From contig RHPI01001507.1 in assembly GCA_009103225.1 (NCBI GenBank), positions 264,249-328,248 of the forward strand: DNA of 64,000 nucleotides. The letters run 5' to 3'. Position numbers and translations under genes: made by a program. The notes beneath the pieces are model-generated. The model worked only from the letters and a program-made list of their open reading frames with translations. It did not search any database and was not told where the DNA came from. Below, in pieces: positions 69-55,922 of this stretch. Source of the DNA: Chlorokybus atmophyticus. Taxonomy: Eukaryota; Plantae; Mesostigma and Chlorokybus algae. Each line of letters starts with the position of its first letter. The first letter of the stretch is position 1.

Positions 69-2807
<2,739 letters not shown>

Positions 2808-5800: not shown

Positions 5801-6180
5801 CGCGCGCATGGAACCTTTAACTCCCAGCGTCAACAAATGCATAGATGTTTTTAATTGTTCTCAGAGCATCTGTCAGCATCTGTCACATCTCAAGCGCCGT
5901 CATCCTCTTCGTTGTTCTTTGCGAGGGGTGTTTATATTACTCTTGCTGCGTGTAAGAGTTGCCTATGTATGAGCTGAGAAATTTTGCCAGACGACAGTGT
6001 GTGGGTGCCGCCTTGCAGCTGCGTGTAAAGAGCGGTAAAACTAGTCGTTTGTCGGGGCCAAAGCGGAGGTGTTGTGCGAGCGTGCCTGCAAGTTGCTGTT
6101 GGCATTGTTGTTCTGTCCACCTGCAAAGCTGTGGTGAGCGTTGGTGTGTGCGTGTGCGTCTCTGTGTCACGGCTACCCCA

Positions 6181-8544
6181 ACGCATGTGGGAAGGTCACG
6201 TATAGAGCCATCACGTTACCCGATGAGACGGGCATGCTCGATCACCTGAGCCTTGATGTAAGAGCCTCATTCCCACTACAACAAATGGCAGCGGACTTCA
6301 ATGCATAGGCCGCTGTCATCGCAACGTGGAACAAGGTGCACATACACACAAATACACATGCGAGTACAGTCATGCACAAGCTTACACCCATGCACTCACA
6401 CGCGCGCACACGCGTGTGTATGCGTCGTGCTATTGTCCTTCTACGACAGGCTTAAGCAACCACCATCAAGTGATAATGTGTGTTGCTCGCTTGCTAATTA
6501 CTCAATCATGCATGCAGGCATGATTGCAGGTGGGCTACTACCCGAATCGCAGCTCCTCGCCAGCAACCTTCCAGATCATCCTTGTATTTGACACGGCACG
6601 CGTGTTCATTTTCTTGCTATACGCCGAGGATACGGGACAAGAACTTTTTGCATTTGGTACCTATCTATGTCGTGTTGTTATTGTCATCTTCGTGATTGTT
6701 TGTGGCTCCCTTTTCCTGCGTGTTTGTGTTGTGTACTCATAGCGCAAGAAGGATATGCGACTGCCGGCACGAATCGATATTACAGCCTGCCTGGCGCTAA
6801 GACATAAAACATCCAGGCGTTGGCGGCCAAAATAACCAACGCATTCGTGGTGCGCATGCTAGGAACAGGAAAAGAAAGAATAGCTGTTTTGCTGCAAGCA
6901 AACTGTGCACATATGATACCGAGTGATTGAATCTCTTTCTTCTCTCAGTCAACTTAATGCTTGTGCTTTGTCGCTCAGGCTGGAAAATGGATATATGGCT
7001 TGAGTGCAAACACCACCCTTGGCGACCAGAGCATGTGAGTGTGTCTTATCACACATGACTGGCTTTATCCATTCAGTATGCCAGCAGCCAATGCGTGTGA
7101 CAACATGGAGAGTACCAACATTGCTGCCATCCAACTTGTGTTGTTGCATGCGCGCAGAGCCGGAGTACAATCGCCCGCCGACGTGTGCCAGATCGTGTTG
7201 ATGGGTGGGCATATTGGCACAACCCCCGGTTGCGAGGGTAAAAGACGCACGATCTCATACGACATTGATGACGACGGCAACATTGACCTTTTCGGCGACG
7301 CCGTTGTGTTTAAGCCATTCGAGTATCCCAAACTCAAGGTTGGATTGAACACGATACGTGCGGCAATCACCAAAGGGAATACAGACCCGGACTCATGTCC
7401 GGCGACACCCCTCATCCTTTCTCTCACTCTGAACCCGATTGTGATTGCGATAAAGTTGGTGTATGGGGTGAATGCCAACACCGACAGCCGCACGCTCGCT
7501 GTCGGTGATAGTATTGATATTCGCTCGAGTATAACCAATAATGCGCCGTGCGTTGAGCCCACGCTCACCATCGACTGTGGACCAGACTCTGTGGTAGGTG
7601 TAAGCGCATGCGTGTGCGTGTGCGTGTGCTTGTGCTTGTGCTTGTGCTTGTGCTTGTGCTTGTGCTTGTGACTGAATCCACCAAGCATCTTGTTTTCATG
7701 CAATCAACTGTGAAAGGGCGCTGCCAGTACACTTATGCAGGGTTGAAGACAGTCAACGTCATTGTGGTGGTAGCGGGACAGTCTACCGGTTTGGCTACCA
7801 ACATCAATGTGGTGGATGTTGCAACCCCGATATGTCCTAACAACACGTGAGCTCAAGTGCATGCTGATGAGTGCAGTCCCACGCGCACTTGCACATGCGC
7901 ACACGCAGTATTGCATACGGTGGCGGCGATGCTTTCATGCACATGTGCATGCATGAACGGACAAGTATGCTGCTTACATGCACGCACTTACAAATAACAC
8001 GTACAGGTATGCTGCTTTCCCGGTGGGGAGGGTGCTCGGCTCTCAGGCGTGCTCGCCAAGCACATGGGCAGCCTTTGCTCGCTCCATCCCATGCCGCTAC
8101 CCGCCACACGTGAGGCCCTACACAAAGTTGTACAACGCGTTTGCGAGCCGAGCGCCGGAGGATGCTGCAGTCATCAAGCGCTACTACGGCGAGCGCACGA
8201 TAGGCCAAGCCCTGTTTGATTTCAGCAGCAGGCGTCTCTCGGCACTTGCAAGAGAGTCAACGGCGGCACTCCTTAACTCCATTCAGTATGTCTACTTCAA
8301 CTGCCCTCTCCAAGTGGCCCTCACCTTCCGTCACACCATGTACAACCTCAACGACACCGCACGAGGTAGTCTTTGCCACTGTGTTGTGTGCTTGCTTGTA
8401 CGTGCGTACGTGTGTGCGTGTGTAATGTGACGAGGACGATGTCTCACCACTGGCTGATGTGCAGTTGATGCGGTCGTGAACAAGTTCGCCACAAAGAACC
8501 AGGCGTCCTTCCCCGGCTGCCCGGTCATTGACTGCAGCAACTGA
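6181..8544 (+). pseudogene. NIDO-Ig/PKD-PDF1-like gene copy 2 (5'-deleted pseudogene)
   Basis: 5900-6150 matches the upstream region of copy 4 (52180-52440), then jumps to the middle of the NIDO exon (CGKVTYRAITLPDETGMLDHL), so exon 1, intron 1 and half of exon 2 are missing. In-frame TAG 6306-6308 and TAA 6805-6807. Later exons are open with intact splice sites; ends FPGCPVIDCSN-TGA at 8542-8544. Confidence 0.85.
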
Positions 8545-11316: not shown

Positions 11317-11349
<33 letters not shown>

Positions 11350-12101
11350 NNNNNNNNNNNNNNNNNNNNNNNNNNNNNNNNNNNNNNNNNNNNNNNNNNN
11401 NNNNNNNNNNNNNNNNNNNNNNNNNNNNNNNNNNNNNNNNNNNNNNNNNNNNNNNNNNNNNNNNNNNNNNNNNNNNNNNNNNNNNNNNNNNNNNNNNNNN
11501 NNNNNNNNNNNNNNNNNNNNNNNNNNNNNNNNNNNNNNNNNNNNNNNNNNNNNNNNNNNNNNNNNNNNNNNNNNNNNNNNNNNNNNNNNNNNNNNNNNNN
11601 NNNNNNNNNNNNNNNNNNNNNNNNNNNNNNNNNNNNNNNNNNNNNNNNNCACCTGCTCTCTGCCCCGCTCCTCCATGATACGAGTTTGGTCCCAAAGATA
11701 GCTGACCAACATCATTATGCATGCATACACTTGCACCCACGTGCACACAAAGACGCTTGCACGCCCTTACTCACTTCTTCACACATTGGTAACTAGGCGA
11801 GAGAGGATAAGAGAATGCGTGCATGGCCGCAATTGTCGTTATTCTAAGCCCAAGCAATGCTTAGTACACACCAACTACTTGATCCTTATTCATGACTTTG
11901 TACAAGTACAGGGTGTATACCCAAATCACCACACTCCTGCGTAACGAAACCCGCCTGCTGTATGGCCTTGTCGACTACCCATTACCAACACTTATTCATA
12001 ACGCATGCACAGCGCGTCGTTCTGGAAGAGTCGATTGTGGCGACAACCACCACAACTGCATTTGGTATGCTCTGGCCAACGTCCTTTTCCTTGCACGAAT
12101 C

Positions 12102-14984
12102 TCAGTGGCTGCAGTCAATGACCGGGCAGCCGGGGAAGGACGCCTGATTTTGTGTGGCGAACTTGTTCACCACCGCGTCAACTGCACATCACCCATTAGT
12201 GAGACGCCGCCCTCGTGACATATACATGCACGCACGTGCTTGTACACATACATGTACAAGCACACAACACAGAGGCAAACTACCTCGTGCGGTGTCGTTG
12301 AGGTTGTACAGGGTGTGACGGAAGGTGAGGGCCACCTGGAGCGGGCAGTTGAAATAGACATACTGAATGGAGTTAAGGAGTGCCGCCGTTGACTCTCTTG
12401 CAAGTGCCGTGCGACGACTGCTGCTGCAACAACCAATCAGAGCTTGGCGTATTGTGAGCTCGCCGTAGTAGCGCTTGATGACTGCAGCATCCTGCGGTGC
12501 CCGGCTCGCGAACGCATTGTACAATTTCGTGAAGGGTCTCACACTTGGCGGGTAGCGACACGGGGCGGAAAACGCTGCGTTTGACCACGTGTCCGACGAG
12601 CACGCCTGTGAACCCAGCACCCTCCCCGCCGGGAAAGCAGCAAACCTGTGCGTGAGTAGGTGTATGTGCGTGCGTGTGCGCATTTGTGTACACGTGCATA
12701 TTCAATACTGCGCATGTGCATCTATGCATGCGCGTGTGCAAGTGCGCGTGGGAATGTGCTCAATAGCATGCACTTAGGCTCACGTGTTGTTAGGACAGAT
12801 TGGCGTTGCAACATCCACAACATTGATGCTGATGGAGGAAGAGTTGGACTGCCCAAACGCCGTGGCGGTGAGCTTTATATTCCTCGATCCGGGACTGTTG
12901 TACTGGCAGCGCCCTTCCACAGTTGACTGCATGAACACAAGATGCTTGGTGTTCAGTCATATGCACACGCACACTTGCTCACGCGCGCATGCACATACCA
13001 CAGAGTCCGCTCCGCAGTCGATGGTGCTGGTGGAACGCACGCTACATAGCGCATGCGCGGAAATGCTCGAGCGGATCGCGATGCTATCCCCAACAACAAG
13101 TGTGCGGCTGCCGGTGTTGGCAACAACCGCACGCGCAGAGTTGATTCTAAGCAAAACCTCGCTGGGATTCAGAGTGAGAGTTGCGATGAGGTTTTCCGCC
13201 GGGCAGGTGGTTGCATTGACAGACCCCGCAGATATCGTCACACGTATCACGTTCTCTCCCACTGTGAGCCTGGGGTAATCAGATGGGTAGAACACCCACC
13301 CCAGGCCGAAGCTGTCGTCGTTGCCGTCGTTGTCAATGTCATACGCGATCGTGCGTGATTGACCCTCGCAACCACCGCTTGTGCCAAATGTTGCCGCCAG
13401 CAATGCAGGCCGGCACAGATCGGCGGGGACTGATTGCGCCGCGGCTCTGAGTGCACGCACGACACAACACAAGGGAAGGTTACTCTTTCAGCCAGGATCA
13501 GCAAGTAATGTATGTATGCAGACAGTCGTGTGTGACAAGACTCACATGCTGTTTGCGCCAAGGGTGGTGCTTGCGCTCAAGCCGAACGCCCACTTTCCAG
13601 GCTGAGCAACAAAGCACTTATCAAGGTAAGTGCGCGTGTGAGAGGGGATACGTGTGTGAGAGAGACAAACACTCTTGCACAAGCTGTCCATGTGTGCGGC
13701 GATCAACATTAACCAATGAGCAGCATGCGCACCACGTTCATGTTGCTCATCTCAGTCACCAACGCCTGGGCAAATGTGGAAGCGCCAGGCAAGATGTAGA
13801 ACCGACCTGTGGCAGCAACTGCATACCCTTCTTGCGCTGTGTATGCGCAAACACGCAGCGAGTGGGCCACAGTCATAACAACAATCAAGACCAACGACAA
13901 CAACAACAACAACGCTTGCAGATTATTTGGTACCAAATGTCACGAGTGTCGTGTCTTCCGCATACAGCAAGAACATGAACACGCGCTGCGTGTCCATTGC
14001 AATGACAATCTGGAAGGTTGCTGGCGAGTCACTTTGCTGATAGAAGTAGCCCACCTGCATATATATCAACGAGCAACAACTGAGCAATGCACAGTGCCAT
14101 TGCCCCAGCCTGTCATAGAAAAACAACAGCACGCATATGTACATGCGCGTGTGTGCGCGCACGTGCATGTACACATGCGTACCTTGTTCCATGTTGCAAT
14201 GATAGCGGCCTGTGCATTGAAGTCCGCGGCAAGCGGGTCGTTTGGAAATGTGGCTCTCACATCAATGCTAAGGTGATCGAGCATGCCCGTCTCATCGGGA
14301 AGGGTTATGGCGCGGTATGTGACTTCACCACAGCTGGCGCATTGCGTGTAGAGATCGGTCCAATACCCTGCCACTACATTGTCGTCGTAGTCAGCAGCGA
14401 GGGGGAACGCTTCTGGGAAGTATGCGCTGGAAGGCGCTTTGAACGTGATGAAACCGTTGGTGTTGACGTACACGCCGTTCACGCCGCTCGCGCCGAACAA
14501 CGGCACGGGGAACGGCAATGCTACGAGAGGTGAAGAATTGTCGTCACCCCTATTGGGAGAATAAGGAGAGAAAGAGTATGAAGCAAACCCATAAGGTGTT
14601 AGCAACTAGACTCTCACCCCCGCACAGACACAGGCACACTTGCTGCATGTGCTGCGTGAAAGGAGTGTTGCGGTGTATGCCACGTCTTCATATCAAGTAC
14701 GTGCATGTTGCGGTAGTGTTGCTCGAGGAATGCACACTATCCCGCCAGCAGAAACAAATGCAACCATACGCTCCCTCCCTCCCCCNNNNNNNNNNNNNNN
14801 NNNNNNNNAAAAACCACGCATACCCACACAAGCATTCTTACATGGCCAGCACAGTGTCCCCGTTTTCCACTCCGAAGAAGTAGAAGTCTTTTTCTGCAGT
14901 GAGGGCTAACACCAGGCGGTTGGGCTTCACATTACAAGTTACAAGACAAAAAGCCAGGAGCAGCCACGCCAAACGGGACCCCAT
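12102..14984 (-). CDS. Intact secreted protein: signal peptide + NIDO + Ig/PKD-like + PDF1-like C-terminal domain (copy 3, 9 exons)
   Basis: ATG at 14984 gives MGSRLAWLLLAFCLVTCNVKPNRLVLA (signal peptide). I followed all 8 GT-AG introns with consistent phases (exon 1 14984-14842, exon 2 14549-14183, exon 3 14054-13934, then six more) and found no stop or frameshift; TGA at 12102-12104. NIDO motifs: YVNTNGFITF, VAGYWTD, IATWNKVGY, TFQIVI, AQEGY..LPGAST..SNMNVPGKWAF. PKD-like: YNSPGSRNIKLTATAFGQSNSSSISINV. PDF1-like: TIRQAL..TALARESTAALLNS..QVALTF..NKFATQN. Confidence 0.85.

Positions 14985-52503: not shown

Positions 52504-55922
<3,419 letters not shown>

Follow-up and report, generated by a model that had tools for sequence, protein, structure and literature searches.

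The 64,000-nucleotide (nt) stretch of Chlorokybus atmophyticus DNA analyzed here (contig RHPI01001507.1, positions 264,249 to 328,248; hereafter, the window) carries on its minus strand, at positions 12102-14984, a gene whose predicted product joins a signal peptide, a NIDO domain, two immunoglobulin (Ig)-like beta sandwiches, and a C-terminal domain related to that of plant protodermal factor 1 (PDF1). The gene model was built from the reverse complement of positions 15100-11900 and has nine exons (14984-14842, 14549-14183, 14054-13934, 13836-13733, 13601-13546, 13446-12999, 12926-12784, 12645-12284, and 12181-12102). Once joined, they give a frame of 1824 nt, made of 607 codons without an internal stop and closed by a TGA at 12104-12102. 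All eight introns are GT-AG, with lengths of 72-292 nt.

Gene model and correction of the public annotation

The first intron (14550-14841, minus strand) contains an assembly gap, a run of N at 14786-14808. This intron is homologous over its full length to intron 1 of copy D, one of three further copies of the gene in the window (A, B, and D, described below), and in the alignment of the two the Ns face ~21 G-rich bases. Paralogs A and D join exons 1 and 2 at the identical position and in the identical phase (two bases plus G), and so does the public model of the gene, P0001. The spacing between the G-D-T and F-G motifs at the start of the NIDO domain is 26 residues both in this protein and in its homolog P0002. 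Because of the intron homology, the shared join, and the equal spacing, no coding sequence appears to be hidden in the gap: the run of N is apparently purely intronic and leaves the reading frame untouched. A second, larger assembly gap, with poly-C/poly-G flanks, lies at about 11330-11650, ~450 nt downstream of the stop codon.

The public counterpart of the gene, P0001 (573 amino acids [aa]; Chlat1/8602, Chrsp86S07998; EukProt EP00898, JGI Chlat1), has seven of the eight junctions of the nine-exon model. It differs by an inner donor, which shortens the end of exon 2, within the NIDO domain, by 26 residues, and by a later acceptor, which cuts eight conserved residues from the start of exon 8, in the C-terminal domain. 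The inner donor was rejected, as it splits the match to the NIDO profile into two stretches; with the outer donor, exon 2 corresponds to profile positions 3-88 and exon 3 resumes at position 89. Moreover, copy D lacks the inner GT, and DNA conservation across the four paralogs extends to the outer donor and collapses just past it. The later acceptor was also rejected, since the eight residues lost hold the motif A-F-P-x-G-R-V, which is kept in P0002, P0003, and all paralogs. The public model Chlat1/8602 therefore appears, from these sequence comparisons, to be mis-spliced at two sites.

Copies A and B have a TAG at the same codon (near 600-650 and 6290-6335, respectively, both on the plus strand), in the counterparts of positions 14183-14260 (minus strand) of the intact gene. 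This codon falls in the 26-residue segment that is spliced out in P0001, and use of the inner donor would bypass the stop. The inner GT is present in the intact gene and in copies A and B and absent from copy D. The stop of A and B may be skipped by alternative splicing or may be a shared pseudogene mutation.

A model that spans several domains could arise from two adjacent genes, one with the NIDO exons and the other with the PDF1-like exons, that were wrongly joined. The short introns and the frame that stays open through all nine exons argue against this, as does the lack, ahead of exons 6 and 8, of a start codon followed by a signal peptide. Copies A and D have their parts in this order too, as does P0002, which is encoded on another scaffold, and the public model joins these exons as well. 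We therefore consider a wrong fusion to be highly improbable.

Signal peptide and features of the whole protein

The N terminus, in which the initial annotation saw a signal peptide, has a charged start and a hydrophobic core. The predicted signal peptide covers about residues 1-20 (14925-14984, minus strand), with an arginine at position 4 followed by a hydrophobic core at residues 5-17 (KD-11 hydropathy up to 2.84), and copies A and D retain the start context. A hydropathy scan of the 607-aa protein revealed neither a second membrane-like segment nor a hydrophobic tail. In its mature form, the protein contains 16 cysteines and five N-x-S/T sequons, and its isoelectric point is 4.9. It is predicted to be a secreted, soluble protein of ~62 kDa, probably N-glycosylated and disulfide-rich.

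A NIDO domain predicted to span five exons

The predicted extent of the NIDO domain is 13546-14890 (minus strand; about residues 33-262), so that it starts late in exon 1 and ends in exon 5, and the domain was recognized by matches of exons 2 and 3 to PF06119. Exon 2 alone scored 60.5 bits (E = 2.8e−16; profile positions 3-88), well above the Pfam cut-off of 25, and exon 3 alone scored 22.4 bits (E = 1.4e−4; positions 89-123), while P0001 as a whole scored 66.8 bits. The direct cover is thus of profile positions 3-123; exons 4 and 5 are too short to score singly but align with P0002, which covers positions 3-183. The domain proposed in the initial annotation is therefore borne out by a match above the cut-off that runs without interruption over the join of exons 2 and 3.

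Animals have several extracellular proteins with a NIDO domain, including nidogen, alpha-tectorin, and mucin-4. Among language-model clusters, the nearest are animal NIDO proteins. The modules that accompany NIDO in animal proteins were absent from the Pfam scans of the exons and of the public models. No close relative of the domain was found in a word search with the NIDO region of P0001, which returned only the query, as did the search with the whole of P0001, and a blank result says little in this type of search. In multicellular streptophyte algae the domain has been reported before, as present in filamentous Zygnema and absent from land plants (PMC11096116). The description of the domain as an animal-type module is hence not supported in that form.

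Two beta sandwiches between the terminal domains

The middle of the protein had been described as a cysteine-containing, beta-rich region with a PKD/Ig-like repeat. An AlphaFold2 (AF2) model of residues 236-430 of P0001, made with an alignment of 11 homologous modules, showed two beta sandwiches, with a predicted local distance difference test (pLDDT) score of 82. The first one is Ig-like and carries a D-x-D-N-D-G loop motif (13173-13445, minus strand; strands at residues 9-95 of the model, pLDDT of about 85), and its module is repeated in P0002 and P0003. The second one is PKD-like and is encoded by the end of exon 6 and by exon 7, with intron 6 inside (12801-13172, minus strand; residues 100-195 of the model). 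When the model of the middle region was searched with Foldseek, it matched tandem Ig-like and cadherin-like pairs. For the second sandwich, VIA-align 2 gave the Ig-like domain of an amylopullulanase (Z = 9.0), the PKD domain of the archaeal S-layer protein 1l0q (Z = 8.7; root mean square deviation of 2.5 Å over 81 residues), and the PKD domain of ColH (4jgu; Z = 7.7), with other Ig-like folds scoring within 1 Z unit of the PKD matches.

None of the Pfam scans of exon 6, exon 7, and the full public models (E of 0.01 to 1) matched the PKD hidden Markov models (HMMs) PF00801 and PF18911; the domain is split by intron 6. Searches against the sequences of the Protein Data Bank (PDB) gave nothing for the profile of the 11 modules and nothing meaningful for exon 6. 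The label PKD/Ig-like thus seems fair for the modeled fold of two sandwiches, but it is not backed by a PKD profile match.

The end domain and its relationship to PDF1_C

The C-terminal domain (hereafter, the end domain) is encoded by exons 8 and 9, with intron 8 inside (12102-12644, minus strand). The results of hhalign and AF2 describe it as a helical, cysteine-clamped, PDF1_C-like domain. The C-terminal motif by which the initial annotation had likened it to PDF1, with Q-A-L and P-x-Q-V among its elements, is present as described and is conserved in the paralogs. We aligned the end domains of eight Chlorokybus sequences, corresponding to five proteins, one fragment, and two copies of the window. 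C23, W28, and A-L-L-N are invariant in this alignment and align with landmarks of the plant and of the prokaryote-type domains; the latter were grouped by sequence motif (C-T-P-G-F/Y-W at the start, G-C-P-L-N at the end) and not by verified taxonomy. The landmarks of the family are an N-terminal Cys-x3-Trp, a central A-A-L-L-N-S helix, and an Asn and Cys region at the C terminus.

Profile-profile comparison extended this likeness to the whole domain. Using hhalign, the Chlorokybus alignment matched that of nine land-plant PDF1_C domains (probability of 97.8%, E = 1e−12) over 105 columns, beginning at the Cys-x3-Trp start and running through the domain's end, with a score of 74, whereas 20 shuffled and one reversed land-plant alignments scored 18 at most. 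The match to 35 prokaryote-type domains was at least as good (98.5%, E = 3.9e−15, 116 columns), with the first Cys and the terminal G-C-P aligned. A search of 5.8 billion sequences with the eight-sequence profile, by a word search that selects candidates by shared 5-mers, retrieved P0008, a protein with PF27764 (E = 3e−9), four metagenomic proteins (E of about 1e−6), and a Phalaenopsis "protodermal factor 1-like" protein (E = 1.5e−4). Well over half of the 119 matches listed carried PF27764. The homology to the C terminus of PDF1 proposed at the outset was thus recovered, but the label "land-plant" was not, given that PF27764 is found in many metagenomic proteins that align with the Chlorokybus domain at least as well.

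The plant link depended on which sequences were in the profile. An exhaustive HMMER search of 1.84 billion representatives with a three-sequence profile of the exon-8 peptide, taken from three copies in the window, gave seven matches (E ≤ 0.001), all of them from Chlorokybus atmophyticus, with P0001 as the best, and none to a plant PDF1. The link emerged only after two subtilase-type proteins of Chlorokybus (P0004 and P0005, described below) joined the profile. Our own PDF1_C HMMs scored 36.8 bits (plant) and 44.7 bits (prokaryote-type) on P0005, showing, at the level of profile scores, that the subtilase-type copies bridge the gap between the end domain of the NIDO-type proteins and PDF1_C.

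Several results count against this assignment. The same HMMs gave weak scores on the protein encoded at 12102-14984 (13.3 bits for the plant and 23.8 bits for the prokaryote-type model), and such low scores with ordinary HMMs account for the precomputed Pfam record of P0001, where PF06119.20 stands alone, without PF27764, while many proteins in that resource show PF27764.1. The outcome with PDF1-family profiles is hence borderline: positive with hhalign, and short of a match in the precomputed record and with single HMMs. Pfam scans of exons 6 to 9 taken singly gave no match, which is uninformative for the end domain since that library lacks PF27764 and left the PDF1 of Punica blank too. Searching the PDB by sequence with the end domain returned nothing meaningful.

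The likeness could in principle result from chance or from convergence on a short helical motif, A-A-L-L-N-S. Choosing candidates by shared 5-mers favors proteins with this motif, and this explanation would also fit the low single-HMM scores, the lack of PF27764 in the record of P0001, and a single-exon Atlas feature score of 0.83. It fits poorly with hhalign matches of 105-116 columns that begin at the first Cys-x3-Trp and reach the domain's end instead of covering the motif only, with controls that stay far below the real score, and with the bridge provided by the subtilase-type copies. It is also at odds with a fold search of the ESM Atlas that ranks a PDF1_C-bearing cluster first (see below). 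A chance resemblance is accordingly very unlikely, and this profile evidence places the end domain in the PDF1_C superfamily (PF27764) as a divergent member. The protein was rejected as an orthologue of PDF1, for it has no proline-rich region, and a NIDO domain and two beta sandwiches precede its end domain.

The AF2 model of residues 420-573 of P0001 is a seven-helix bundle (pLDDT of 78). Its nearest neighbors in the ESM Atlas were bacterial clusters, with template modeling (TM) scores of 0.65-0.72. The best of them (TM score of 0.72) has PDF1_C in 12% of its members, and further clusters carry DUF7507, DUF11, or SdrD_B Ig repeats. The cysteines near both ends of the domain align with the two flanking cysteines of the prokaryote-type domain, and a Cys-Cys clamp is predicted. 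In the search for solved structures, no relative of the fold was found by Foldseek against the PDB (best E = 1.1), and a wide VIA search with the model of the end domain reached a Z of 5.2 at best, with three-helix minibinders, a score at noise level when the model is helical.

A multicopy family and a partly decaying cluster

A tblastn search with the gene model revealed three more copies in the window, all damaged, so that the gene at 12102-14984 is the sole intact one of the four. In copy A (about 69-2807, plus strand), a single-base frameshift interrupts the signal peptide and the TAG lies in the equivalent of exon 2. The 5' part of copy B (about 6123-8544, plus strand) is missing, and the copy contains several stops. 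In copy D (about 52505-55916, plus strand), the equivalent of exon 8 contains a stop and that of exon 6 a change of frame. At the expected place of exon 5 of copy A (about 1150-1300, plus strand) there is a long (GA)n/(TC)n microsatellite with a single N, which translates as an S-L or E-R repeat. The ratio of nonsynonymous to synonymous substitution rates (dN/dS) among paralogs is mostly 0.25-0.5, which indicates past purifying selection on these coding sequences.

With three of four copies interrupted by stops or frameshifts, the cluster is partly decaying. The gene could then be an unexpressed or dying member of this tandem cluster that has not yet been hit by mutation, an explanation favored by the lesions of A, B, and D, i.e., in-frame stops, the frameshift in a signal peptide, another frameshift, and a missing 5' part. 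Yet, the frame is open over its 607 codons, each of the eight introns is canonical, and the start and stop contexts are conserved. The dN/dS values against the paralogs and the fact that the public annotation calls the gene also speak for a maintained one. We thus regard a dying copy as an unlikely explanation.

The family extends beyond the window. P0002 (Chlat1/5076, 1349 aa), encoded on another scaffold, combines a NIDO domain with five copies of the module pair and with the same end domain (E = 7.5e−26), and P0003 (Chlat1/4938) is a further member in Chlorokybus atmophyticus. The end domain was also matched, with E values of about 1e−7, in the subtilase-type proteins P0004 (969 aa, Chlat1/6589) and P0005 (437 aa, Chlat1/35), again encoded on other scaffolds. 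The latter architecture consists of a Peptidase_S8 domain, a WAK-type galacturonan-binding domain (GUB_WAK_bind, above the cut-off in P0005), a Cys-rich region, and a PDF1_C-like domain. These proteins constitute a lineage-specific, multicopy family in which shuffling has placed the end domain on at least two secreted scaffolds, one with NIDO and beta sandwiches, and the other with subtilase and WAK-type galacturonan-binding domains.

Prokaryote-type relatives and the origin of the end domain

Among the matches listed, most proteins with PF27764 are metagenomic and have the prokaryote-type motif. One of the prokaryote type is labeled Nitrososphaera, and P0012, the sole one traced, lies on a contig with genes of bacterial type (those of UvrC, AhpC, and chlorite dismutase). 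In P0104 (with DUF7507) and P0112 (with SpaA), Ig-like repeats are followed by PDF1_C.

We built a maximum-likelihood tree of 50 domains, which is unrooted and separates a prokaryote-type group (support of 96/95), the land plants with P0008, and Chlorokybus (96/92). All five Chlorokybus end domains, NIDO-type and subtilase-type together, are in the latter clade, so that the end domains of the two architectures share one origin and the domain was shuffled within the Chlorokybus lineage. None of the Chlorokybus domains falls within the prokaryote-type sequences sampled in this unrooted tree. With an unrooted tree and a short domain, neither vertical descent nor transfer is demonstrated.

P0008 is the best match outside Chlorokybus. 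It is a protein of 133 aa with a plant-like N-T-R-T-D-G-Y-G-A-L motif, encoded at 1870-2271 of contig L001 of the Logan assembly SRR33208250. In the tree it joins the land plants, with a long branch, and it could come from a streptophyte alga or a bryophyte.

Under an alternative scenario, a cassette of beta sandwiches and PDF1_C-like domain was acquired by the Chlorokybus lineage from bacteria by horizontal transfer and then fused to NIDO, rather than being inherited from an ancestor in common with land plants. The same order of parts is indeed found in P0104, in P0112, and in the Atlas clusters; the profile match is slightly better with the prokaryote-type than with the plant domains and extends to the cysteine of the terminal G-C-P, which is missing from angiosperm PDF1; and the exhaustive HMMER matches included no relative in other algae. 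Set against this are the position of the Chlorokybus domains outside the sampled prokaryote-type clade and the eight spliceosomal introns of the gene. Moreover, the two flanking cysteines are not exclusive to the prokaryote type, as they are also retained in small Cys-flanked plant proteins (P0038 type). Overall, transfer of the cassette seems rather improbable.

Proposed function and implications

The best explanation for these data, to which we give a probability of about 0.72, is that 12102-14984 is an intact nuclear Chlorokybus gene encoding a secreted protein of a shuffled family, with the order signal peptide, NIDO, two Ig-like sandwiches, and PDF1_C-like domain, and with a probable structural or adhesive role in the wall or mucilage. 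PDF1 is an extracellular proline-rich protein. FOCL1 has been described as a putative cell wall glycoprotein (PMC6110162). Based on the types of domain and on this description of FOCL1, a role in wall or matrix structure or in adhesion is the most likely one. It is suggested because all the component domains are extracellular, because in plants the end domain caps PDF1-type proline-rich proteins, and because the domain follows Ig-like repeats in prokaryote-type proteins and adjoins subtilase and galacturonan-binding domains in Chlorokybus. From the idea of an algal matrix, wall, or adhesion protein that joins an animal-type to a land-plant module, we thus keep the secreted, modular protein with domains of extracellular types and leave out the two labels of origin.

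In the mechanism that we propose, the NIDO domain and the two Ig-like modules would act as a stalk presenting the Cys-clamped helical end module. This module might dock onto a polymer of the wall or surface or onto a partner, which is conjecture. The protein would then contribute, as a structural or adhesive component, to the wall or mucilage by which the sarcinoid packets of cells are held together.

Besides the low profile scores, the absence of a solved relative of the end fold, and the decay of the neighboring copies, a few points weigh against this reading. PDF1_C has no known biochemical activity to support the docking step. The 90% cluster of P0001 has a single member, whose source is the genome annotation. 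Finally, the queries were single exons or portions of the public model, which is 34 residues short of the 607-aa one.

Literature searches on PDF1 in algae, on NIDO in green algae, and for the Chlorokybus genome paper gave no description of a NIDO/PDF1_C fusion. The combination, called novel-looking in the initial annotation, is real and, as a fusion, apparently undescribed. The gene itself was already a public gene model. The fusion is only moderately surprising, since bacteria have the end domain too.

PDF1 is in wide use as an epidermal marker in plants. To our knowledge, its conserved C-terminal domain has neither an established biochemical role nor a solved structure. The presence of a divergent PDF1_C in the earliest-branching lineage of streptophyte algae, as well as in metagenomic proteins that are in part bacterial, means that the domain is neither an invention of land plants nor tied to proline-rich proteins. 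Its positions behind Ig-like repeats and beside subtilase and pectin-binding domains provide independent contexts from which its function may be inferred. In a tentative and rather doubtful scenario, PDF1_C was an ancient extracellular "end-cap" module in streptophytes before land plants, was shuffled in Chlorokybus onto NIDO/Ig-like stalks and secreted subtilases, and was only later set on the proline-rich rods of the epidermis. If this scenario is correct, the Chlorokybus family, with its soluble and well-folded partner domains, would offer a tractable route to the binding target of PDF1_C, and this target would be informative on the role of PDF1-type proteins at the interface of wall and cuticle. 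Chlorokybus is a subaerial alga, relevant to the colonization of land by plants, and its poorly known wall and mucilage now gain a candidate lineage-specific extracellular family. The analysis also proposes corrections for two splice sites of the public gene model.

Comparison with known systems

Within Chlorokybus, P0002 has the same order of domains as the protein encoded at 12102-14984 and differs in size, with five module pairs in 1349 aa instead of one pair in 607 aa. P0004 and P0005 share only the end domain with it and have Peptidase_S8 and GUB_WAK_bind in place of NIDO.

Compared with nidogen, alpha-tectorin, mucin-4, and the NIDO proteins of Zygnema, the Chlorokybus protein is alike in having a NIDO domain, with a score above the Pfam cut-off. 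It differs from them in the partners of this domain, which are Ig/PKD-like and PDF1_C-like in Chlorokybus.

The prokaryote-type PDF1_C proteins provide the best profile match, and those among them with Ig repeats (DUF7507/DUF11, SpaA, and SdrD_B) have the same succession of beta-sandwich repeats and helical end domain. In contrast to the Chlorokybus protein, the prokaryote-type proteins have no NIDO domain, their beta sandwiches belong to other families, and their PDF1_C domains form a separate clade.

The plant PDF1 proteins (PF27764) are likewise secreted and have the end domain in the same C-terminal position, with the Cys-x3-Trp start and the L-x-x-A-L and A-A-L-L-N-S helices. The region upstream is different: it is proline-rich in the plant proteins, as in the PDF1 of Punica (P0029), where it accompanies a hydrophobic start, and is replaced in Chlorokybus by NIDO and the beta sandwiches. 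The end domain itself is very divergent and has extra cysteines, including those of the terminal G-C-P-x3-C, which angiosperm PDF1 lacks.

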